Source: Macrostomum lignano (taxonomy: Eukaryota). Taken from it: a DNA stretch of 64,000 bases. This document shows, piece by piece, positions 4,123 through 64,000 of the stretch (position 1 is the first letter of the stretch; every line of letters begins with the position of its first letter). Both the position numbers and the translations under genes were made by a program. The stretch lies in NCBI GenBank assembly GCA_002269645.1, contig NIVC01000514.1, positions 124,001 to 188,000 on the forward strand, given 5' to 3'. The notes beneath the pieces were generated by a model that saw only the letters and a list, made by a program, of their open reading frames with translations, was not told where the DNA came from and made no database searches.

Positions 4123-4994
4123 CACCAGCTATCGCAGGTCGAATCTGTGTTGGAGGGCAAAATTTTCTATGGATTAATGTGTGCGAATTAGTTTTTAAGA
4201 CTCTTTCAAACGTGTTTTCAGGAGCAGCCCGCTTTTTCTGTATCGTCTTTTTGATACTTGAGTATATGTTGAACGGTTTCTTTGAAAAGCCTATTTTGAC
4301 GCAGCACTTTCCTGCCAGTTCACTCCATCAGAGTCCCGATCAGATCCCCTGCCAATCTCATTTTTGCTCTCGATCAAAATCTGAAAATTTTACGCATCTG
4401 TGTTTGAGATTGAGCATCTTATTATTAATGGGTAATCCAATTTTACCCACATTCAGGCCGGCCCTGATATTTGTAATCCTGACGGCCTTTTATTACTAAT
4501 AAACCGAATAAAACTGACAAAACTGTTTGTTTACAAACAGGATAAAGTTTTTAATACACTCGTACACCTTTCCGTTCATAATTTTAACAAAACTCTCATT
4601 CTATTTCGGCAATTAGATATTCTATTTCATACCATAGTGAGGGCGCTCATTCTGTCTATGGACAAAACTTGCTCCTGCATGCAAATTTCCCAAGTTCTAT
4701 TTCGACAAAGCTATATTTAAATTCAGAAAAACGTTTTAGCGTTCTGTATCAATCTTTAACATACTCCAGTCTCAAGCTACAAATATACTACAGCCCATGG
4801 CTTTCTACCGCGCCCCTCTCAGAACTGAGGGCCCTCTCCTGAAGTTTGCTTCCAGCAGACGGAAGCTCCGGTGTGCGATGTCAGACGCACTGAGTTCATT
4901 TTTGAAAAGGTAGATACGAAAATAAGAAGAATGAGCGACGAGGAGATGTTCGAAGAAGCAGGGGATAAAGAATTAAGAAGAAGAAGAAGAAGAC

Positions 4995-8465: not shown

Positions 8466-9091
8466 ATCAAGCCATTGACCTTTCTGCAAACCAGAACTGC
8501 AGGCGGAAGAGCATTCTTGCTGACAGCTTATCAAGTTCAAAAGCATATCTGAGTCAAGTTTACGTGTCCAAGTGACGAGTTGCATGGAGAAAATGTTCAT
8601 AAGCAGCGACCAGTCTGAATTTGAACCATCAGACGATGAGCGATACTTATCAACTTAATTGCACCGGTCCTTAATCTGCATGGCAACTCACATTCTTTAA
8701 GCTGTGCAATGGATTTTTCTTTGCTGTATTAACAGCAAGGTAACAGCAGCAAAATTATTTTGCAGGCAATTGTATCCAGTAGTGAACTTGTGTATGGCAC
8801 AGGTTTCGTTTCAATCTCCATAGCACCAAGTTTAAGCGCTATATTTCCGCTGGCAAAATAGACCGCAGTTTTGGCGCACGAGAACACAAAAAGGTATGTT
8901 AGTTTTGTACTTTCTAAACGTATGTTCCTTACATTTCTACATTTAATAGAGCATCAAATATGTATAATTAAGACTAATTATATTAAGACAGTAGAAAAAT
9001 ATAAACTTTAATGGCTTGTATTTATTGGCGTGCGCGCCGCCCTCCTGTCTCCCGCTGCCCTTTTCGCTTAGAGCGATTCCTAGACCACCAG

Positions 9092-17433: not shown

Positions 17434-28595
<11,162 letters not shown>

Positions 28596-32835: not shown

Positions 32836-33068
32836 ACTCGGCCCTCTCGAGTCTGAGGATGAGCTTTTAAGGAGAGCCCTACTCCAGACTCTGCTCCCAG
32901 ATCTCCTTGACCCAGCGCGCTCCCCTATCCGCCAGCATCTCTGCCGGGTGACAGGTGCATCCATAATTTATCCCAATGGGATAATAATCCGCGTCCCAGC
33001 CCCAGTCAATAGGAAAAATTCCCAGATCCCCCCCCCCCGATCTCCAGTCCGGCGCCACCGGCCAGGCC

Positions 33069-33075
33069 TATAAAA
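33069..33075 (+). promoter_or_regulatory. Putative TATA box of iGluR-B
   Basis: TATAAAA about 130 nt upstream of the ATG at 33206. Confidence 0.45.
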
Positions 33076-33205
33076 CTGGCTGCGCTGAGCTGGGGCTCAC
33101 TGACTCTGAGCTCACTGACTCTGTGCTCACCGACTCTGAGCTCACTGACTCTGTGCTCACCGACTCTGAGCTCACTGACTCGCCACCGCCCTGCACCGAG
33201 ACGTC

Positions 33206-36200
33206 ATGAGCTGCCGACTGCTGACGCTGCTGCTGCTCGCCTGCTGCTGCTGCCTGGCCGCATCCCAGGCCGGAGCGGCCGACCTTGAGAACCGAGAGCT
33301 CCGCGTTGTCACCATCACGGTGAGCTGGGAGACCCTCAATGCTGGATTGCGTATTGAGTCTGGGTTAACGGTTGCCAAATCCCAGAGTCCAGAACATCTC
33401 AGAATTATAGTGTCAGGGCGTTTATTCCCCGTAGGCCCATTAACTATTAATACTGAGCCCTGAACCCTGAACCCTGTATGTACCCTAAATCCTTAACCCT
33501 GAACTCTGAACCCTAAACCCTAAACGCTGAAGCCTTGAATCTTGAAATCTGAACCCTGGACCCTAGACCCTAGACCCTAGACCCTAGACCCTGGGCCCTG
33601 GATCCTGAAATCTGAACCCTGGACCCTGAACCCTGAAGTCTGAACACTGAACCCTGGACCTTGAACTCTAAACCCTGAACCCTGAACCCTGGACCCTAGA
33701 CCCTGGACCCTGGACCCTGGACCCTGGACCCTGAACCCTGGACCCTTGGTTTGAAGAGTAAAGGTTTTCAAAGGTTTCAAGGTTTCAAACCAAAGCTGAA
33801 CCCTGAACCCTGTACCCTGAACCCTGAAACCTGTACCCTGGACCCTGTACCTTAAATCCTGAACCCTGAACCCTGTACCCTGTACCCTGAACCCTGGACC
33901 CTGGACCCTGGACCCTGGACCCAACCCTGAACCCTGAACCCTGAACCCTGAATCCTGAAATCCGAACCCTGAACCCTGGACCCTAGACCCTGAGCCCGGG
34001 AACCCTGAACCCGAACCCTGTATCCTGAACTCTAAACCCTGAACCCTGACCTGAGCCTTGAGCCCTTTGTATTGAACCCTGGTCCAGTCCCCAACTGTGA
34101 ACCCTAAAATCTTAATTCGAACACTGTAAACTAAACCTAAGCGCTAGCCACGCCCCATCCGATAAACGCTACGTGCAGCAAAAGCCCTTCGTGATGCGGG
34201 TGGAAGGCTCGGAACCGGTCAGATACGTGGGCTTCTACATCGACCTGCTGAACCTCCTGCAGCGGGAGCTGAAATTTCGCTACCGAATCTACGAGGTAGC
34301 CGACAGCAGGTTCGGATCCCGCTCGCCGAAGGGGGTCTGGAACGGCCTGATGGGCGACATCGTGAACAAGGTGGGTGATGGAAGTAAGAGAAGATGCGAA
34401 CGATGCGAGTCTGTGACCGCAGCGGGGTTCGGTTGGAGTGTTTTATCAAGTTGATCGACTTTGAGTTTAGAGGAAAATTCTGCTCAAGTCTGGCGTGCGA
34501 GTCACTGGGTGACAGTCTGTGTGAGCCACTCGGTGACAGTCTGTGTGAGTCACTCGGTGACAGTCCGTGTGAGTCACTGGGTGACAGTCCGTGTGAGCCA
34601 CTCGGTGACAGTCTGTGTGAGCCACTCGGTGACAGTCTGTGTGAGTCACTCGGTGACAGTCTGTGTGAGTCACTGGGTGACAGTCTGTGTGAGTCACTCG
34701 GTGACAGTCTGTGTGAGTCACTCGGCGACAGTCTGTGTGAGTCACTCGGTGACAGTCCGTGTGAGTCACTGGGTGACAGTCCGTGTGAGCCACTCGGTGA
34801 CAGTCTGTGTGAGCCACTCGGTGACAGTCTGTGTGAGTCACTCGGTGACAGTCTGTGTGAGTCACTGGGTGACAGTCTGTGTGAGTCACTCGGTGACAGT
34901 CTGTGTGAGTCACTCGGTGACAGTCTGTGTGAGTCACTGGGTGACAGTCTGTGTGAGTCACTCGGTGACAGTCTGTGTGAGTCACTGGGTGACAGTCTGT
35001 GTGAGTCACTCGGTGACAGTCTGTGTGAGTCACTCGGTGACAGTCTGTGTGAGTCACTCGGCGACAGTCTGTGTGAGTCACTGGGTGACAGTCCGTGTGA
35101 GCCACTCGGTGACAGTCTGTGTGAGCCACTCGGTGACAGTCTGTGTGGATCACGGGGTGACAGTCTGTGTGAGTCACTCGGTGACAGTCTGTGTGAGCCA
35201 CTCGGTGACAGTCTGTGTGAGCCACTCGGTGACAGTCTGTGTGAGTCACTCGGTGACAGTCTGTGTGAGTCACTGGGTGACAGTCTGTGTGAGTCACTCG
35301 GTGACAGTCTGTGTGAGTCACTGGGTGACAGTCTGTGTGAGTCACTGGGTGACAGTCTGTGTGAGTCACTCGGTGACAGTCTGTGTGAGTCACTCGGCGA
35401 CAGTCTGTGAGTCACTGGGTGACAGTCTGTGTGAGTCACTGGGTCACAGAAGCCAGCCACCTGTCCCGCAGACGGCAGACCTGACCCTGGCCACTCTGCG
35501 CATCATGCCCAAAAGGCTGGAAGCCGTGGACTTCACGCTGCCGGTCTCCTCCTCGGGCCTGTCGCTGCTGTACAAGGAGGCGGCCTCGCAGACCTTGCAG
35601 ACCTCGCAGGCCGCCCTGCTGCTGCAGCCGTTCGCCGCCTCGGTGAGTTCTGCGGTTCACTGGACACTGACCGAATCACTCGGCCCTAGCTAGCTGTGAC
35701 TGGGGCCCCGATCAGCAGACAGGTGCCACCCAAAGGTCCTGCTATCTGGAAGTTTCCAAAGGTCCCGAAGGTCTCCTCACAGGCATTCAACATTGTGCAA
35801 AATCATCTTGTTTAACTTTCCCCATAGACCTGGGTGCTGCTACTGCTGCTGTACATCTTCTTCTTCCACCTTTTTCTCGCCTCCCGGAGTAGGTGGCACC
35901 CAAGTTTCCCGGACCCTTACTCGCCGCAAATTCTCTCATGTCTCGCCATATTCGTCGTTGCCAGCCACCTCTTGCAATATCTGCCCTCTTTCCTCTTGCT
36001 TTTGTACATTCTCGCTACCATCCTCGGTGCTTCCTCATTCGTCGTTGGTCTCTCGCTTATCTGGTCGTTCGTTTCGCATCCCTTTCTGAGTCTTGCATAA
36101 TTTGATTTGCTTATCCATCTCTTGCAGCTGTTGCATTCTCTCCTGGTTCCCTCTACTCTGCCTCCTGTGCACCATTTCTCATGGTTTTTCCTCGTCGCTT

Positions 36201-39200
36201 CCGTCTTAAAAACGCTATCACACCTCTTGCAGTCCATTCTTATTCCGGTCTCTTGTCTGTGCATACGTTCCTGTGGATGGCTAGTCCTTCTCTTGATCTG
36301 CATATTTTCTCGCATCCGTCCTCCCAGCACCTGAAGCCAATGAGTTCGTTTTCCTCCATTGGTAGTTCTCTTTGTCCGTTCTGGTTTTCTGGTTCTTCTT
36401 CGGCTCTTCCCTTGGTTTTACTTCTCTCTTGTTCAATCGTATCCCACTCGGCGTCCCGATCTTTGATGATTTCCCTCCACTTCTCTTTTGTCCGCGAGCT
36501 GTCCGACTCTGAGTGGGTCGAGTTTCTAATGAGTTTTCTCCAGTACGTAATTATCGTAGTCATCCTTTTCTTTGGTCTTTTCATTGATTCTAATCTCTTG
36601 TTCCATCCCATGACACAGATTTTCGTTATGCTGGAGTCTGGCAATCTCCACGTGGCCTAGTCTCCTCCAGTGTGCCGTTTCGATTTTTCTTTGAATGCTT
36701 TTTATCCCGATTTCTCGTCTCACGTCCCACATATTAACCTGTCTTTCTTCCATCTCCCGCAGAGGTTCTTTAGTTTTTCTGCTCCAAATATATCTGTAGT
36801 ACTTACCCATAATTCTTTGGAGTTGATTGATCTAGCTTTTTTTGAAGTGTCTAGCTCCTGCGTTGAACGTGAGCGTGCTTTCGACGCAGGCTTCGATCTC
36901 TCTCGCTTGAGTGCGTTCGTTAGTCTGGTTCTTCTGAGTCGCTTCTTAACTTTTGCCCCGGATGTCTTCTTTGTCTCCGAGCCACAGCCCCAGCATTCGG
37001 ATTCTATTGCTCTCTGCTGTTCCTACTGTTGCTGTCTCTTCTTTCGCGTCGTTCGTTCTTTCTTGTAGCCATCCCAAGACTGTCTTCACCGTCGTTTCTT
37101 CTTCGATTTCTTTCTTTCCGCCAATCACCGCGGTATCATCCGCGAACAGGGAGCAGGTGATCCGCGTGGTGGTTGATTCTTCCGTGAACTTATAGTTTCT
37201 CTGTGGTGGTCAGTGTTTTCCTGGCAGATAGGTCCATTCGATCCCAACTTCTTCGCCTCTGTTTGCTGCTGTGGTCTTTCTAGCTGTTTCTGCCGCTCTC
37301 ATGACCGCCTGATGGTAGATGTTAAAAAGTACGGGTGAGGTCGCGCATCCTTCATGTAATCCCCTTTGTGAGAAAATATGTGACTATCCTCATCCTCCGT
37401 GTGTACTTTGTATGCGGTGTGCTCATGTAGGCCCTTTAGTTTCTCGATCATTTTGTCTGGCATCTCGTGGTGTGCGAGTAGTCGCCAGAGTGCTGGCTTG
37501 TTTACTCTCGGATATTGAAGTACTTATGGTTTTCTCGGGGTGGCCTGTTAGGTCTTTGAAACCCACCGCTGCCACCAGTGAAGTACTTATGGTTGTCTCG
37601 GGGTTTCTCCTGCTGTCCAGCGCAGTGACTTGGGCTCTCCGTCTTCTCACTCGGAAGCCTTCTTAACTCTTAGTAGCGTAGGTAGTGCTGCCACCAGTTC
37701 CTTCAGGTCTCGGCCTTCGATGAGGTGAGCTTCCCGTCGGAACGAAATAACGAAGTCAACGAACTCGAAGGCGTCTCGTCAGCAGCACCTGCCGGGCTTG
37801 GTTGGTATGGGAGGGTTGAGTTAGCCTCTCGTAGGCTTGGGGTTTGCTTTAGTAGGGTCTCAGTCAGACCAGCACAAGCAGATTTAGTGTACGCAAAGAG
37901 GGGACTTAGTTCAGTCAATAGCGCACGCGGGCTCTTAGAAGTTTAGAGGCAAGCAAAGACTCCGGCAAAGACTCCTTGACGGAAACAAGGAGGAGAGGGG
38001 TCCTATTTATAGCCGGGATTCTCCCGCGCACAAGACCTCGTGACTTGTTCTATTTTTAGAACTGACGTCACTTGAGGTCTCGGGGCAGGGTCTCAGTGCG
38101 CGCAAGACCTCGTGACTCGTTCTATTTTTAGAACTGACGTAACTTGAGGTCTCCGGCCAGAGTACACGCGGCTGTGACTCAGTTGCTATTTTTAGCAACA
38201 TGAGTCACTCCTCTCCTTAGAGAAAGGAGGGGTCCGAAAGCACGTGATTCTCCCGGTAAACAGGGCCAACGAGTGCAGTAAACATGTTTACTGCACTTTA
38301 AGACTCCAAGAACGCAAGATCTGTCATGTGACTTGCTCACAAGACAGAGGAAAACGGGACGGGAACGAAACAGAGACAGCCCACAGCAGAGAAGCCGAGT
38401 GCTGAGAACAGAGACGCAGAAGGGCAGAACAGGCCAAGGGCAGCAACAGACAGCCAGGGGGGCGGGAAGCTGACCAGCGGCAGACAGCAACCCTGGGCGA
38501 GGGCGAGGGAGACTGCTGACAAAGGGGGACGCCAAACACTAAACTAGCGGCTCACTACAATATGCTTTTTTTAGATCCAGCAATTTAGCCACGGTATCGC
38601 TGTCTCCGCTAACTTCATCTTTCCCATTCTCTGCATTTCCGCTGATCTTTTGGTCAGTTTCGCGTCTTCCTGTAGTCTGAGGATGATCTGAGTGGCGTCC
38701 ATCGTCGACCTGTCCCGCCTGAAACCCGCTTGATTCTCGTCCAGGCAGTTGATCCCTTCCGCCCACCTGTTGATTCGGGTTGCGATAATCTTGCCAAGAA
38801 CCTACTTGTCATCGGTAGTAGGCAGACACCCCGATAATTGTTTAGGTCTTTTTTGTCTCCTTTTTTGTGTAACGGGATGATGAGTCCTAGCTTTTGTCCT
38901 TCTCCCCATTTCGTCGCCGATTCCGTCCACAGTCTGGTTATTTCAATGAGACATTCTTCTCTTACTGTTTCACACGCTGTCTTGATGTAGATCAGTCTTA
39001 ATTCGTCTTCTCCTGGTGCGCCGTTTTTCATTTTGTTCAGTTCTGTCGTGCCGTGCAGTTGGCATAAAGAAACTCAGGGTTTATTTTAACTAGCAAGTAG
39101 CCTATTTAATAATAATGACTCGAGCAGTGGCTGAGAGAACACCAAAATAGAGTCACGTGATGACAATCAACTACGTACAACTACATGGAAGCTTAGGGGT

Positions 39201-41944
39201 ATGGCCAGTCAGAGCGAAGGGAGAGGAAAGAATGGTGTGCACGTACGATGCACGTACATAGCATAAGTTAGTTAGTTAGCCAGTGCCTAGAGCTCAGCGC
39301 TCCGGAACCACAAGTTCTCTTTCGAATTCCTTCCAGGTGATTGGATCCATTAAGGCCTGGTTTGCTTGCTCTCTAAGTTTCAACATTCAGCATTGTGCAA
39401 AATTATCTTGTTTTACTCTCCCCATAGACCTGGGTGCTGCTACTGCTGGTGTACATTATCTACCTCGGCCTGGCCTTCGTCCTCTTCCTGCTGTCCCCCT
39501 ACGAACTGGGCGGTAGCGCCGGCAGCGCCTCCTCGACCGTCGCCAAAGCGAGGAAAGCCGGCTGCGGAGCCTTCGCGTTCATCACTGGCGGCCTCTTCAT
39601 CCAGGGTGAGTATGCAGTCGTGGATTTTTAACCTGTGATGCTAAATTTGTGATGTTTAATCTGTGGTGTTTAATCTGTGATGTTTAATCTGTGATGTTTA
39701 TCTGTGATGTTTAATCTGTGATGTTTAATCTGTGATGTTTATCTGTGATGTTTATCTGTGATGTTTATCTGTGATGTTTAATCTGTGATGTTTAATCTGT
39801 GATGTTTAATCTGTGATGTTTATCTGTGATGTTTAATCTGTGGTGTTTAATCTGTGATGTTTATCTGTGATGTTTAATCTGTGATGTTTAATCTGTGATG
39901 TTTAATCTGTGATGTTTATCTGTGATGTTTATCTGTGATGTTTATCTGTGATGTTTAATCTGTGATGTTTAATCTGTGATGTTTAATCTGTGATGTTTAT
40001 CTGTGGTGTTTAATCTGTGATGTTTATCTGTGATGTTTAATCTGTGATGTTTAATCTGTGATGTTTATCTGTGATGTTTATCTGTGATGTTTATCTGTGA
40101 TGTTTATCTGTGATGTTTATCTGTGATGTTTAATCTGTGATGTTTAATCTGTGATGTTTAATCTGTGATGTTTAATCCGTGTTCTGCGAATTCCCGAAAC
40201 ACTCAGGCTTCGCGCGCACCCCGAAGGCCCCCTCGGCCCGCGCCTTGGCCTTCGCCTGGTGGCTGTTCGCCCTGGCCACCGCCTGCTGCTACACGGCCGG
40301 CCTGGCGACCCGCCTGATGGCCGGCCGCCCGACGGCTTCCGCCAAGTTCGGCAGCCTGCAGGAGCTGATGGCGCAGTCAAAAGTGCCTTACGGAGTGCTG
40401 GCCGGCGGCTCCACCGCCACCATGCTGGCTGTGAGTAACCTGGCGGGCCCTGGACCTGATATCCTGAATCTGACACCCTGGATCTGACACCCTGGATCTG
40501 ACACCCTGGATCTGACACCCTGGATCTGACACCCTGGATCTGACACCCTGGATCTGACACCCTGGATCTGACACCCTGGATCTGACACCCTGGATCTGAC
40601 ACCCTGGATCTGACACCCTGGATCTGACACCCTGGATCTGACACCCTGGATCTGACACCCTGGATCTGACACCCTGGATCTGACACCCTGGATCTGACAC
40701 CCTGGATCTGACACCCTGGATCTGACACCCTGGATCTGACACCCTGGATCTGACACCCTGGATCTGACACCCTGGATCTGACACCCTGGATCTGACACCC
40801 TGGATCTGACACCCTGGATCTGACACCCTGGATCTGACACCCTGGATCTGACACCCTGGATCTGACACCCTCGATAGTGCTCTAAAACTATTAAGCACGG
40901 ACGTCCTGCCCGGAAAATTTCAGAACTCCAACATTCCCGAGTTCCTGGCCGTCAACGCCTTCCTGAGCCGCAATCCGAGCTGGAACGTCAAGAGCACTGA
41001 GGACGGACTGCAGCGCGTGAGGAAGGGCGGCTACGTCTGGATTGCCGAGGGCATCACCGCCGACTACCACGGCATGACCGAGTGTGAGCTGGTGTCCTCG
41101 CCCACCGGCCTCGCCACCGTGGACATCGGCCTGGCCATTGCCAAGGGTACGTCAGCGGGAGCTTAGACACCTGCAGACACCTGCAGACACCCTCAGACAC
41201 CTGCAGACACCCTCAGACACCTGCAGACACCCTCAGACACCTGCAGACACCCTCAGACACCTGCAGACACCCTCAGACACCTGCAGACACCCTCAGACAC
41301 CTGCAGACACCCTCAGACACCTGCAGACACCCTCAGACACCTGCAGACACCCTCAGACACCTGCAGACACCCTCACACACCTGCAGACACCCTCAGACAC
41401 CTGCAGACACCCTAAAACACCTTCGCAAATACCCTAGCAGGCACCCTGACAGACATCCTCCCCGATGCGATCCCGCAGGCTCCAACCTGAAGCAGGCATT
41501 CGACGCGGCCATCCTGAAGGTCAAGGCCAACGGCGAGCTGGACAGCATGAAGAGCCGCTGGTGGCAGAAAAACGACGACCAGTGCGCCGCCAAGGCCTCC
41601 GACTGGCCCAGCCCGCTGGCCCCTGGCGACCTGCTCGGCCTCTACCTGGTGCTGCTGCTCGGCTGCCTCGCCGCCTTCGTTGCCCTGCCCTTGGAATTTA
41701 TGCTGAAGGCTGCCGGACTGCCCTTTTGCGGGCGAGGCCAGCAGGTCTGAGAGCTCTGCTTGGCAATTCCGTCCCTTGCATTCAATTTCAAGTTTTCTCC
41801 GCCACTCCAAATGCCCCGCAGGCCGAGCAGCCGGCCGCCGCCGCCGCCGCTGCCCAGGATAAGCCAGGCAAAGACGCCGGTGCCGTTGCCACAGCCGGAT
41901 CGGAGGAGAAGCAGCCGGAGCCGGAGTCCAAACCTCTGGTTTAA
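33206..41944 (+). CDS. Divergent ATD-less ionotropic glutamate receptor-like subunit (iGluR-B), 8 exons, about 496 aa
   Basis: Exons 33206-33319, 34179-34370, 35472-35642, 39428-39605, 40207-40430, 40924-41146, 41479-41744, 41822-41944 (1491 nt, all GT-AG, phases compatible). Signal peptide then LENRELRVVTI, GFYIDLL, WNGLMGDIV, ADLTLATLRIMPKRLEAVDFT, M1, FITGGLFIQG, WWLFAL..CYTAGLATRLM, GGST, WIAEG, RWW..C, M4. Confidence 0.88.
33450..34060. repeat. Heptamer minisatellite (gaaccct/ggaccct), telomere-like
   Basis: Visible CCCTGAA/CCCTAAA/CCCTGGA units in iGluR-B intron 1. Confidence 0.85.
34495..35440. repeat. 24-bp intronic tandem repeat (gtgacagtctgtgtgagtcactcg)
   Basis: Visible units; source of four long ORFs. 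Confidence 0.95.
35784..35856 (+). repeat. Left copy of a 73-bp direct repeat (LINE target-site duplication) containing the 3' splice site and start of the iGluR-B M1 exon
   Basis: Matches 39384-39456 with 5 mismatches (offset exactly 3600). Confidence 0.85.
37471..38559 (-). mobile_element. Solo LTR (about 1.09 kb) inserted in the LINE RT
   Basis: TG...CA termini; splits RT between DLKKAY and MPDKM; TATAAATA on the minus strand at 38004-38011; duplicated enhancer-like block; no TSD visible. Confidence 0.65.
39044..39312 (-). mobile_element. Solo LTR (269 bp) of the Gypsy family at 61675-64000
   Basis: TGTCGTG...ACCACA flanked by a perfect 5-bp TSD AGTTC (39039-39043, 39313-39317); aligns to 61675-61939. 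Confidence 0.92.
39384..39456 (+). repeat. Right copy of the 73-bp target-site duplication, continuing into the intact M1/pore exon
   Basis: Acceptor CCATAG|ACC at 39427/39428; exon open to the donor at 39606. Confidence 0.85.
39630..40175. repeat. 13-14 bp intronic tandem repeat (ctgtgatgtttaat)
   Basis: Visible units. Confidence 0.95.
40470..40870. repeat. 14-bp perfect intronic tandem repeat (tggatctgacaccc)
   Basis: Visible units. Confidence 0.95.
41165..41410. repeat. Intronic tandem repeat (cagacacctgcagacaccct)
   Basis: Visible units. Confidence 0.9.
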
Positions 41945-61618: not shown

Positions 61619-61674
61619 GTGAGTCCGAGCTGCAAGGCCGGGCGGGCTTCTGGAACAGCCAGTTTGTTTACCTG

Positions 61675-61939
61675 TGTCGTGCCGTGAATTTGGCATAAAG
61701 AAACTCAAGGTTTATTTTAACTAGCAAGTAGCTTATTAAATAATGACACGAGCAAGGGCCGAGAGAACACCGAAATAAAGTCACGTGATGATAAATAACT
61801 ACGTACAAGTACATGGCGGCTTAGGGGATGGCCAGTCAGAGCGAAGGGAGAGGAAAGAATGGTGTGCACGTACGATGCACGTACATAGCATAAGCTAGTT
61901 AGTTAGCCAGTGCCTAGAGCTCAGCGCTCCGGCACCACA
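61675..61939 (-). mobile_element. 3' LTR (265 bp) of the Gypsy element
   Basis: TG...CA termini next to the PPT; homologous to the solo LTR at 39044-39312. Confidence 0.9.
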
Positions 61940-64000
61940 TCCCGTCATCACCAACGAGCTGTCAAGCGGTCAGGAGGAACGCCCTTGTTGCCGCGCTGGC
62001 TCCTCCTGAGCCCCGTATCAGCCGTATCGAGCTCACCGGCTTGAGGATGCTCAACAGTCGCTGACTCTCCCGAATCGTTGGTCGGCGCCTCCGATACGTT
62101 GAGCTCCGGACGGCCTCCTTCGGCCTCCGACCCGGCCGCGGCCAGCAGTGGGCGAAGCTGGTCCCTGTGCGCCAGGACGGGCCGGTCCGACTCGGTCCGG
62201 GTGACGATCGCCGTGTTGTGCCCGGCCTGCACGACGAACTCAGCAAGCTCGGGCTGTGCGCTTTGGCGAGCTTGGTAAACGACCGGGGCGTCCGTCTCGA
62301 AGGTCAGCGTCAACGGGCTTCTCAGCTGCCGACCCATCAGCGCTGAGGGGCTGCCTCGGCCGTCACTACGTGGAGTCGCTCGGTAGTTCAGCAGGAGCTT
62401 GGCCAGGTATGCGTCAAATGGTCCTTGATGAGCTGCAAACGCCTTGAGTCCTCGCTTGACAGTCTGCACCATCCGCTCGGCGCAGCCATTGGACTGCGGG
62501 TGGTACGGCGGCGTGAAGAGCTGATTGCAGCCGATCCGCTCCAGCCAGCCTTGAAGCTCCTGATCGTGGAACTCTGGTGCGTTGTCAGACACCAGAGTGT
62601 GCGGCACGCCTTGCCTCGCGAAGATGGCCCGTAGAACTCGAATCACCGTCCTCGCGCTCTTGTCTGCCACGTGCACGGCTTCCGGCCAGCCAGAGAAAGC
62701 ATCAACCAGCACCAGAATCAGGCCGACTCCCGACACGTGAGCATGGTCCATGTGCACCCGCTTCCAAGGCGTCTCCTCGGTAGGTCACGTGTGCACCGTG
62801 CGATTGGGCAGTGGTCGGATCCTCATACATGTCGCGCACTGCTTCACAAACCGCTCAACATCATTGCAGTGCCCCGGCCACCATGCTTCGCGTTTGAGTC
62901 GATTTCGCGTCGCCAGCGCTCCGCTGTGGGTCACTCCGTGAGCCGCTTGCAGCATTTTACTACGGACCGCGGCAGGCGGGACCAGCAGGTCTCCGCAGCA
63001 TACGACGCCGTCTTCGATCGTCAACTGATAACGGACAGCCTTGAACGGACGCTCTGCAGCCGAGCAGTTGGACCAGACATTCTTCTGGATCCGGCGCTTG
63101 ATGCTCTTGAGCACTGGGTCGATGTCTGTTCCCTGGCGGATTTCCTCAAGCCTCAACAGGTCAGTCTCGGTCCAGTGGATGAAGCCACCATCGCCACTAG
63201 AATCGCCGTCATCGTTGCTCTCGAATGGCATCCGGGACATGGCATCCACGTGAGGGATGCTGTTGCCCTTGACGTAGGCGATGTCGAAGTCGAACGCGGC
63301 AAGCTGAATGGCCCACCGCATGATCCGCGCCGAAGTCACCTTGGGAAGCTCCCGACTGGGTCCGAAGATGAATTCCAGTGGCTGGTGGTCGCACTGAAGC
63401 AGGAATTTCTTGCCCAATAGAAAGTGCTTTGCTCGCTGAGTTGCCCAGACGACCGCCAGAGCCTCCCGCTCGATGTTGGAATAGTTGCGCTCGGCGGGTG
63501 AGAGGCGCCTTGACAGGTACAGCACCGGGTGGCCGTCTTGGCTGAGGATTCCCGATACTGCGGACTCGCTGGCATCTGTCGTCAGGGTGGTCAGCTTCCT
63601 GGGATCGAATATGCGGATAACCGGGTACACCGCCAAGGCTCGCTTGAGGTCTTCGAAAGCTTTTTGCTGCTCCAGGCCCCACACAAAGCTGGACTTCTGA
63701 CTCCTCAAAGCAGTCAAGGGCTCAATCTTCTCCGAGTAGGCCTGGATGTAGCGCGCATAATAGTTGGTGAGCCCCAGAAACGACTCCAGCTCCTTCCTCG
63801 TCGTGGGCGGCTTGACCTTCTGGATCTTCTCCACCAGCTTCTTGTCTGGCCGAACTCCATCCGCTGAGATGCGATACCCCAGGAAGCAGATCTCGGTGCT
63901 TCGAAAGACGCACTTCTCATGGTTAATCTCCATGCCAGCCTCTTTGAGGGTGCTCAGCAAGTGCTTCACTTTGGCATCCAGCTCACCTTCTGTCGGAGCG
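61675..64000 (-). mobile_element. Ty3/Gypsy LTR retrotransposon, 3' part (RT end, RNaseH, integrase, PPT, 3' LTR), runs off the window
   Basis: ORFs 62785..63969 and 61948..62757 are in the same frame, separated by one TGA (62785-62787, expected Trp). TDAS, IEREALA, HSG..CATC, VHMDHA, SDNAPEF, PQSNG; PPT ggtgatgacggga abuts the LTR. Confidence 0.93.

Follow-up and report, generated by a model that had tools for sequence, protein, structure and literature searches.

How can a gene remain open after a retrotransposon has landed in one of its coding exons, when such insertions normally kill the gene that receives them? The question is raised by a 64,000-nt stretch of Macrostomum lignano DNA (contig NIVC01000514.1, positions 124,001 to 188,000; hereafter the window, whose own numbering is used throughout), where an exon of a predicted ionotropic glutamate receptor (iGluR) gene is broken by a long interspersed nuclear element (LINE) and is found again, complete, on the far side of it. 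The explanation that we favor, and regard as very probable, is that a LINE encoding zinc fingers inserted through target-primed reverse transcription (TPRT) into exon 4, which encodes the M1 transmembrane segment, and that the resulting 73-nt target-site duplication (TSD) rebuilt the splice acceptor and the start of the exon, so that the gene would have stayed functional.

A long direct repeat flanks a 5'-truncated LINE

The segment at 35784-35856 recurs at 39384-39456 in a gap-free alignment in which 68 of the 73 positions are identical, and the differences lie at -38, -24, -14, -10, and +21 when the first exon base is taken as the reference. Each copy is made up of 44 intronic nt, comprising the polypyrimidine tract and the AG, followed by 29 exonic nt; both this composition and the five mismatches agree with the original prediction, which had been made from the sequence of the window. 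The upstream copy (plus strand) thus carries an intron 3' end with an intact AG (a decoy acceptor) and an exon start that opens a pseudo-exon at 35828, whereas the downstream copy (plus strand) supplies intron 3 with its functional 3' end (39384-39427) and exon 4 with its first 29 nt. The CTG at +19 to +21 of the upstream copy is the derived state, since a second copy of the gene, represented by the protein P0002 discussed below, shares the state of the downstream copy.

A BLAST search of the 64-kb window with either 73-nt copy returned the other copy as the sole match (E = 4e-27). In a self-comparison of the whole window the pair was the only dispersed direct-repeat pair, all remaining pairs being tandem minisatellites, and BLAST added one further dispersed repeat, a long terminal repeat (LTR) that we call B (39045-39312 / 61660-61939). 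Homology breaks off sharply at both edges of the 73-nt repeat: the left edge reads ...CACAGG|CATTCAAC in one copy and ...GTTTCAA|CATTCAGC in the other, and the right edge ...GTACAT|CTTCTT and ...GTACAT|TATCTA. Outward from the repeat, both copies run into unique gene sequence, the upstream one into intron 3 and exon 3 and the downstream one into exon 4. The window contains no N gaps.

The interval between the two copies is occupied by one 5'-truncated non-LTR retrotransposon, which lies on the minus strand, in antisense orientation relative to the gene, and by two later insertions nested in it, B and C. Reverse-transcriptase (RT) motifs are found on the minus strand in broken frames that B and C interrupt; with these two blocks taken out, the interval is LINE from end to end and the LINE adjoins both 73-nt copies directly, its pieces (35857-37515, 38564-39044, and 39319-39383) amounting to 2205 nt. 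The 3' part of the element (35857-37515, minus strand) ends in the tail GGAAGAAGAAG, the reverse complement of 35857-35867, which directly touches the upstream 73-mer. It also includes a 3' untranslated region (UTR) of ~65 nt, C-terminal C2H2/C2HC fingers, and the RT from the region of the YxDD box (FADD) to its end. What follows 35856 is a LINE 3' end in reverse complement, and the exon is interrupted exactly where the original prediction had placed the break. The middle part (38560-39044, minus strand) covers the N-terminal RT region, from LNKMKNGAPGEDE to the motif LDLKKAY, and the 5'-most surviving piece (39313-39383, minus strand), which reads LKLREQANQALMDPITWKEFERE, adjoins the downstream 73-nt copy.

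Pfam gave no match for the individual broken open reading frames (ORFs) of the LINE, and the domain was seen only in a frame-stitched protein of 719 aa (RVT_1, E = 1.8e-19). Against 25 relatives of ~1150-1250 aa, this protein aligns from its residues 2-6 to the relatives' C termini, and the alignment starts in the relatives at residues ~453-515, which means that the LINE in the window is missing its first ~450-515 codons. By this alignment it is a 5'-truncated copy whose truncation point abuts the downstream 73-mer. Its 2205 nt carry a minimum of eight disabling lesions (at least five frameshifts plus three in-frame stops), and no further copy of the LINE was found within the window.

The 73-nt repeat can be read with high confidence as the TSD of the LINE, made by TPRT, because both ends of the LINE are flush with the repeat and both copies of the repeat run outward into unique gene sequence. 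Indeed, the repeats directly flank the element at its tail (35857) and at its 5' truncation point (39383), and the element itself, a non-LTR retrotransposon bearing RVT_1, has its 3' tail at the first of these junctions and its 5' truncation at the second.

The host gene and the splicing of exon 4

The host gene occupies 33206-41750 on the plus strand and consists of seven exons (33206-33319, 34263-34370, 35472-35642, 39428-39605, 40207-40430, 40924-41146, and 41479-41750). With 39428 as the acceptor of exon 4, all intron borders are GT-AG and the coding sequence of 1290 nt specifies 429 aa, with a signal-peptide-like beginning and one terminal stop. Pfam matches on the 429-aa model (Lig_chan-Glu_bd, 1e-18; Lig_chan, 7e-16; SBP_bac_3, 4e-10) display the layout of an iGluR, in which the S1 and S2 lobes are split by the M1-pore-M3 channel and M4 comes last, and by these matches the gene is a compact iGluR gene of Macrostomum lignano that lacks the amino-terminal domain. 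Exon 3 (35472-35642, plus strand), the end of the S1 lobe, closes with ...PFAAS in phase 0 and is followed by the donor GTGAGT at 35643. The present-day intron 3 (35643-39427, plus strand) is 3785 nt long. Exon 4 (39428-39605, plus strand), which reads TWVLLLLVYIIYLGLAFVLFLLSPYE... and encodes M1, is followed by the consensus donor CAGG|GTGAGT at 39606. That the downstream copy continues as a complete, open exon, as had been proposed, is thus confirmed for 39428-39605.

A paralogous iGluR gene lies upstream in tandem and in the same orientation (~23790-27500, plus strand); it is more canonical, carries a WWR motif, and shares the intron before M1. Its intron falls at the same codon and in the same phase (...SPLSPT|VW... 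compared with ...PFAAS|TW...) and has a single acceptor at ~24984, so the intron and its acceptor are ancestral, and the LINE hit an exon that already existed. Before the insertion, intron 3 would have measured 185 nt (35643-35783 plus 39384-39427).

The junction also occurs in two UniProt gene models. P0001, a UniRef entry from M. lignano returned by a protein search with the spliced exons, maps at ~100% identity to 33048-33319, 34263-34379, 35469-35642, and 39428-39499, and this mapping makes it a model of the present locus. Its sequence, ...LQPFAAS|TWVLLLLVYIIYLGLAF..., contains the junction from 35642 to 39428 with the valine specific to the downstream copy. P0002, a second and diverged copy of the gene, also has this junction, translated in a shifted frame, and both models splice PFAAS|TWVLLLL. 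Their reading frames are disturbed elsewhere: the start of P0001 lies in the 5' UTR (33048-33205), read in another frame, the real start being the ATG at 33206 (MSCRLLTLLLLA...), and a C-run in exon 4 (39489-39572) throws P0001 out of frame. P0002 is read in a wrong frame starting where exon 3 ends. This mis-framing is probably due to homopolymer indels in an older assembly.

Functional rescue through splicing of 35642 to 39428 is likely but unproven. The decoy acceptor at 35828 is probably disfavored by exon definition, as the pseudo-exon behind it lacks a good donor and the real exon keeps a consensus one; the GT sites of the pseudo-exon are poor (GGA|GTAGGT at 35889 and TAG|GTGGCA at 35893). 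Reading on from the decoy leads to a premature stop at 36098-36100. Both the decoy and the real acceptor are richer in pyrimidines than the other acceptors of the host gene, and part of the transcripts could still be lost to the decoy and then to nonsense-mediated decay. The distribution of lesions speaks for selection on the gene: at least eight are present in 2205 nt of LINE and none in 1290 nt of coding sequence, where 4.7 would be expected at the LINE rate, giving P(0) of ~0.009 on the assumption that the lesions arose after the insertion. The original prediction had claimed that the gene was rescued by its own duplication, and the structural part of that claim stands, with a TSD, an intact downstream exon, and gene models that use the junction; the rescue of transcripts is likely rather than shown, and the decoy is intact by sequence.

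Two side observations concern the gene itself. The pore/M3 motif encoded by 40207-40430 is unusually divergent (CCYTAGLATRLM), with YTAGLATRL as the pore-lining motif in place of the SYTANLAAF usual in iGluRs, and the receptor, which lacks the amino-terminal domain and has a shortened S1, could be a divergent iGluR particular to this lineage. In addition, nearly all introns of the gene are full of minisatellite arrays (34494-35449, 39640-40200, 40440-40860, 41170-41420, and many others), whose units, 24 nt repeated ~40 times at 34494-35449 and 13/14 nt at 39640-40200, create long spurious ORFs on both strands.

Mechanism, age, and alternative explanations

The events at the locus might be reconstructed as follows. 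The first nick would have fallen on the plus strand of the window between 35856 and the present 39457 (GTACAT|TATCTA) and would have primed cDNA synthesis from the (GAA)n tail of the LINE, and an early stop of reverse transcription would have left a 5'-truncated copy of 2.2 kb. The second strand would have been nicked 73 nt away, within intron 3, and the fill-in would have duplicated the 44 nt of the intron 3' end along with the exon's first 29 nt. In the sequence the downstream copy remains continuous with the remainder of exon 4, so that a complete exon with its own acceptor is present, and the LINE and the upstream copy now belong to intron 3, which they lengthened from 185 nt to ~2.5 kb. 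Two LTR retrotransposons would later have entered the LINE and collapsed to solo LTRs, bringing the intron to 3785 nt.

The insertion is not recent. The two 73-nt copies have diverged by 6.8% (95% confidence interval 2.2-16%), and the homeologs of M. lignano differ by ~1.9-2.4% (PMC10733133). Because the divergence of the copies exceeds the ~2% between homeologs, the insertion is probably older than the genome duplication, with the gene kept open since then, which suggests that the homeologs may all carry it.

Several points weigh against the favored explanation. A scan of metagenome contigs with the acceptor and exon-start sequence gave no match to an empty site, that is, a single 73-mer without the LINE, and no DNA record was found for the second gene copy P0002, so that no empty site came from there either. 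The amphioxus copy L004, the only relative of the LINE with a cleanly measurable TSD, has a clean one of 13 bp, which makes 73 bp atypical of the clade. The case for rescue is built on sequence and gene models rather than on RNA; some of the LINE lesions may predate the insertion, which would weaken the argument from selection; and the homeologs of M. lignano are redundant, so a damaged copy could be tolerated (PMC10733133). Moreover, the decoy acceptor is intact, with 13 pyrimidines in 17 positions against 14 in 17 for the real acceptor, and is the nearest to the donor. The state of the decoy speaks for an alternative that we consider unlikely, namely, that the TSD is genuine but rescued nothing, in that 35828 captures most transcripts, which are degraded, and the homeologs supply the function. 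The decoy is slightly nearer the consensus than most acceptors of the host gene, M. lignano has three homeologous subgenomes (PMC10733133) and a second gene copy in P0002, and P0001 and P0002, as frame-disturbed partial models, are no proof of a productive mRNA. If the gene had been silenced in this manner, however, it would be difficult to explain why all seven exons are open with consensus splice sites despite an insertion old enough to show 6.8% divergence, two nested insertions, and the lesions of the LINE. Both gene models take the distal junction, the donor comparison given above favors exon 4 over the pseudo-exon, and no catalogued protein containing the read-through product of the upstream acceptor was found, a negative that is weak since the shared N-terminal part did not score either.

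Two other explanations deny that the repeat is a TSD at all, and both are rejected because the two ends of the LINE are flush with the repeat copies. The 73-bp segment could have been duplicated in tandem before the LINE inserted between the copies, a scenario to which the extreme richness of the genome in intronic tandem minisatellites and the failure to recover an empty site lend some color. We nevertheless judge it highly improbable, as the LINE would have had to find the exact junction of the copies without producing a TSD. Duplicating the acceptor in tandem would also have burdened the gene with a 73-nt frameshifting insert or a decoy, and in the paralog and in both gene models the acceptor and the exon start are each present once. 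An assembly artefact, in which homeologous or allelic sequences were joined into a chimera, is barely credible to us even though 36% of the Mlig_3_7 assembly length has been reported to lie in chimeric scaffolds (PMC10733133) and a difference of a few percent between the copies is what diverged homeologs would give. Joins through shared sequence would not set the LINE tail and the truncation point flush with the copies, and there are no gaps; the 6.8% divergence is about three times the single-nucleotide polymorphism rate between homeologs (PMC10733133), and exons to either side of the insert are matched at 100% by a UniProt gene model.

Affiliation of the LINE and the length of its TSD

The relatives of the LINE, which were taken from protein matches with best identities of 42-51% and include no M. 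lignano copy, combine an apurinic/apyrimidinic (AP) endonuclease, RVT_1, and C-terminal zf-C2H2 fingers, and the fingers fall within the region aligned to the copy in the window. In that copy, the C-terminal region (35917-36330, minus strand) contains roughly four finger-like Cys/His motifs (such as FRCWEDGCEKICRSREGLAIHRNVC and CKRCDSVFKTEATRKNHEKWC), which the relatives keep as zf-C2H2. Vingi LINEs have the same layout of AP endonuclease, RT, and C-terminal C2H2 fingers. Similarly, a single protein of L1Tc/Ingi elements comprises AP endonuclease, RT, and C2H2 zinc fingers at the C terminus, and C2-L1Tc has two C2H2 motifs (PMC2805920); Ingi proper differs in having an RNase H, none of which was detected in the relatives of the LINE studied here. 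The fingers suggest an element like Ingi/Vingi and unlike RTE, the likeness to Ingi/Vingi being confined to architecture.

Membership in the RTE clade, with which the original prediction had accounted for the long TSD, was considered and is not borne out. RTE elements have a single ORF of ~1000 aa that encodes only AP endonuclease and RT, whereas the relatives of the LINE are 1150-1250 aa long and carry the C-terminal C2H2 finger block, and the RTE TSDs in the studies cited here measure 7-20 bp. The resemblance to RTE lies in the short 3' UTR and the trinucleotide microsatellite tail, as in Heliconius HmRTE-e01 with its tail (GAA)2GA (PMC2887409). In particular, TSDs are 7-15 bp in the majority of the RTE clade (PMC6007223), 10-12 bp in the RTE-like schistosome element SR3 (PMC1291365), 10-20 bp in lepidopteran RTE (PMC2887409), and 8-20 bp in plant RTE (PMC5850137). 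Much longer ones are known from other LINEs: 126 bp in rotifer R9 and a median of ~900 bp in Chlamydomonas Dualen-4b (PMC9977147), and L1 TSDs run from several nt up to several hundred, the long ones being rare (PMC1291365). The 73-bp TSD is therefore unusual but has precedents, and on present evidence it is an outlier event and not a habit of the family.

Among the relatives, L001 has the same (GAA)n tail as the LINE in the window, and L002 and L003 end in other short microsatellites; no flanking repeat was found for the relative L006. The comparison of TSDs covered L001-L004 and L006, the remaining relative, L005, being located at the end of a contig. L001-L003 are three intact relatives of ~4.0 kb from one ENA assembly, and each has (GAT)n arrays on both sides (4191-4617 and 8675-8800 for L001; 4667-4777 and 8734-8768 for L002; 3943-4395 and 8428-8569 for L003). 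Just before the downstream (GAT)n array stand the tails of these relatives, (GAA)n, (GATA)n, and (GATGC)n, and the length of their TSDs is unreadable. Such an arrangement could result from microsatellite-targeted insertion, from insertion of tail into tail, or from long microsatellite TSDs. For the LINE in the window, too, the target was a trinucleotide-like run, made up of the CTG Leu codons of M1.

Nested insertions and a Ty3/gypsy-like element

Both insertions nested in the LINE have the marks of solo LTRs. B (39045-39312, minus strand) is 268 bp long and is bordered by a 6-bp duplication, AGTTCT (39039-39044 and 39313-39318); its excision in silico gives a single open frame, LKLREQANQALMDPITWKEFERELNKMKNGAPGEDE..., from base 39383, next to the downstream 73-mer. 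A second copy of B, which is 90% identical and occupies 61660-61939, directly adjoins the 3' side of minus-strand ORFs for RNase H and integrase, and because it adjoins these ORFs, B is assigned as the LTR of a Ty3/gypsy-like element and the copy within the LINE as a solo LTR. C (37516-38559, minus strand) measures 1044 bp, has TG...CA termini on the minus strand, and is bordered by a 4-bp duplication, ATAT (37512-37515 and 38560-38563). It splits the RT between the motifs LDLKKAY and PRVNKPALW, and its excision restores ...LLDLKKAYPRVNKPALWRLL..., joining LDLKKAY to PRVNKPALWRLL. C is probably a solo LTR of a family other than that of B. Within C, a 72-bp internal tandem direct repeat, 91% identical, is found at 38026-38163, and a 26-nt motif occurs twice, 63 nt apart (37516-37604); no other copy of C was found in the window.

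The Ty3/gypsy-like retrotransposon to which the second copy of B belongs is partial (61660-64000, minus strand), with RNase H/integrase ORFs at 61948-63969 followed by the 3' LTR at 61660-61939, and it runs past the end of the window. Its LTR at 61660 comes after exon-like sequence, ...KWYKALNFV|gtgagt, that ends at ~61620, and the element probably lies within an intron of another gene.

Discussion

The insertion at this locus is best regarded as an ordinary TPRT event with an unusually wide stagger between the nicks, a single case and a variant of known mechanisms. It resembles the long-TSD LINEs, i.e., R9, Dualen-4b, and L1, in that the target repeats abut a 3' tail on one side and, on the other, an end with variable 5' truncation, and that their length is given by the spacing of the nicks (PMC9977147, PMC1291365). 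The LINE in the window, however, has the architecture of neither R9 nor Dualen, and its TSD happens to span a splice acceptor. In this last respect it comes close to introners, whose insertion into coding sequence is tolerated as the duplicated target supplies a splice signal and the element leaves with the intron (PMC11282704, PMC9860276). Introners are mostly short DNA transposons with TSDs of 3-8 bp that supply one splice site, and they create new introns at many loci (PMC11282704). In contrast, the element described here is a LINE with a 73-bp TSD that duplicated a whole pre-existing acceptor and extended an existing intron, at one locus. Intron gain of the introner type was considered and does not apply, given that the intron pre-existed, its position and phase being shared by the paralog, and that the window holds no second copy of the LINE. 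A targeted search of the literature, represented in it mostly by titles and abstracts, found no earlier description of this exact configuration, which does not establish that there is no precedent.

It is tempting to generalize from this case. Long TSDs from staggered nicks might recur in the finger-bearing LINE lineage of Macrostomum and provide a general, overlooked route by which insertions near splice sites pass from exonic to intronic, lengthening introns and leaving decoys and pseudo-exons behind, a proposal that we regard as doubtful at present. The value of the locus, a single one known from sequence alone, is that of a clean example and a search template, not of a new principle. What it illustrates is an insertion mechanism that undoes its own damage, since the long stagger duplicated the acceptor together with the exon start and the exon was rebuilt downstream of the element. 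In this sense it is the counterpart, among LINEs and for the extension of an intron, of the TSD-assisted splicing of introners, and it suggests one source of sudden intron growth, of decoy acceptors, and of pseudo-exons. If long TSDs prove to be recurrent, such pseudo-exons and decoys could later become alternative exons.

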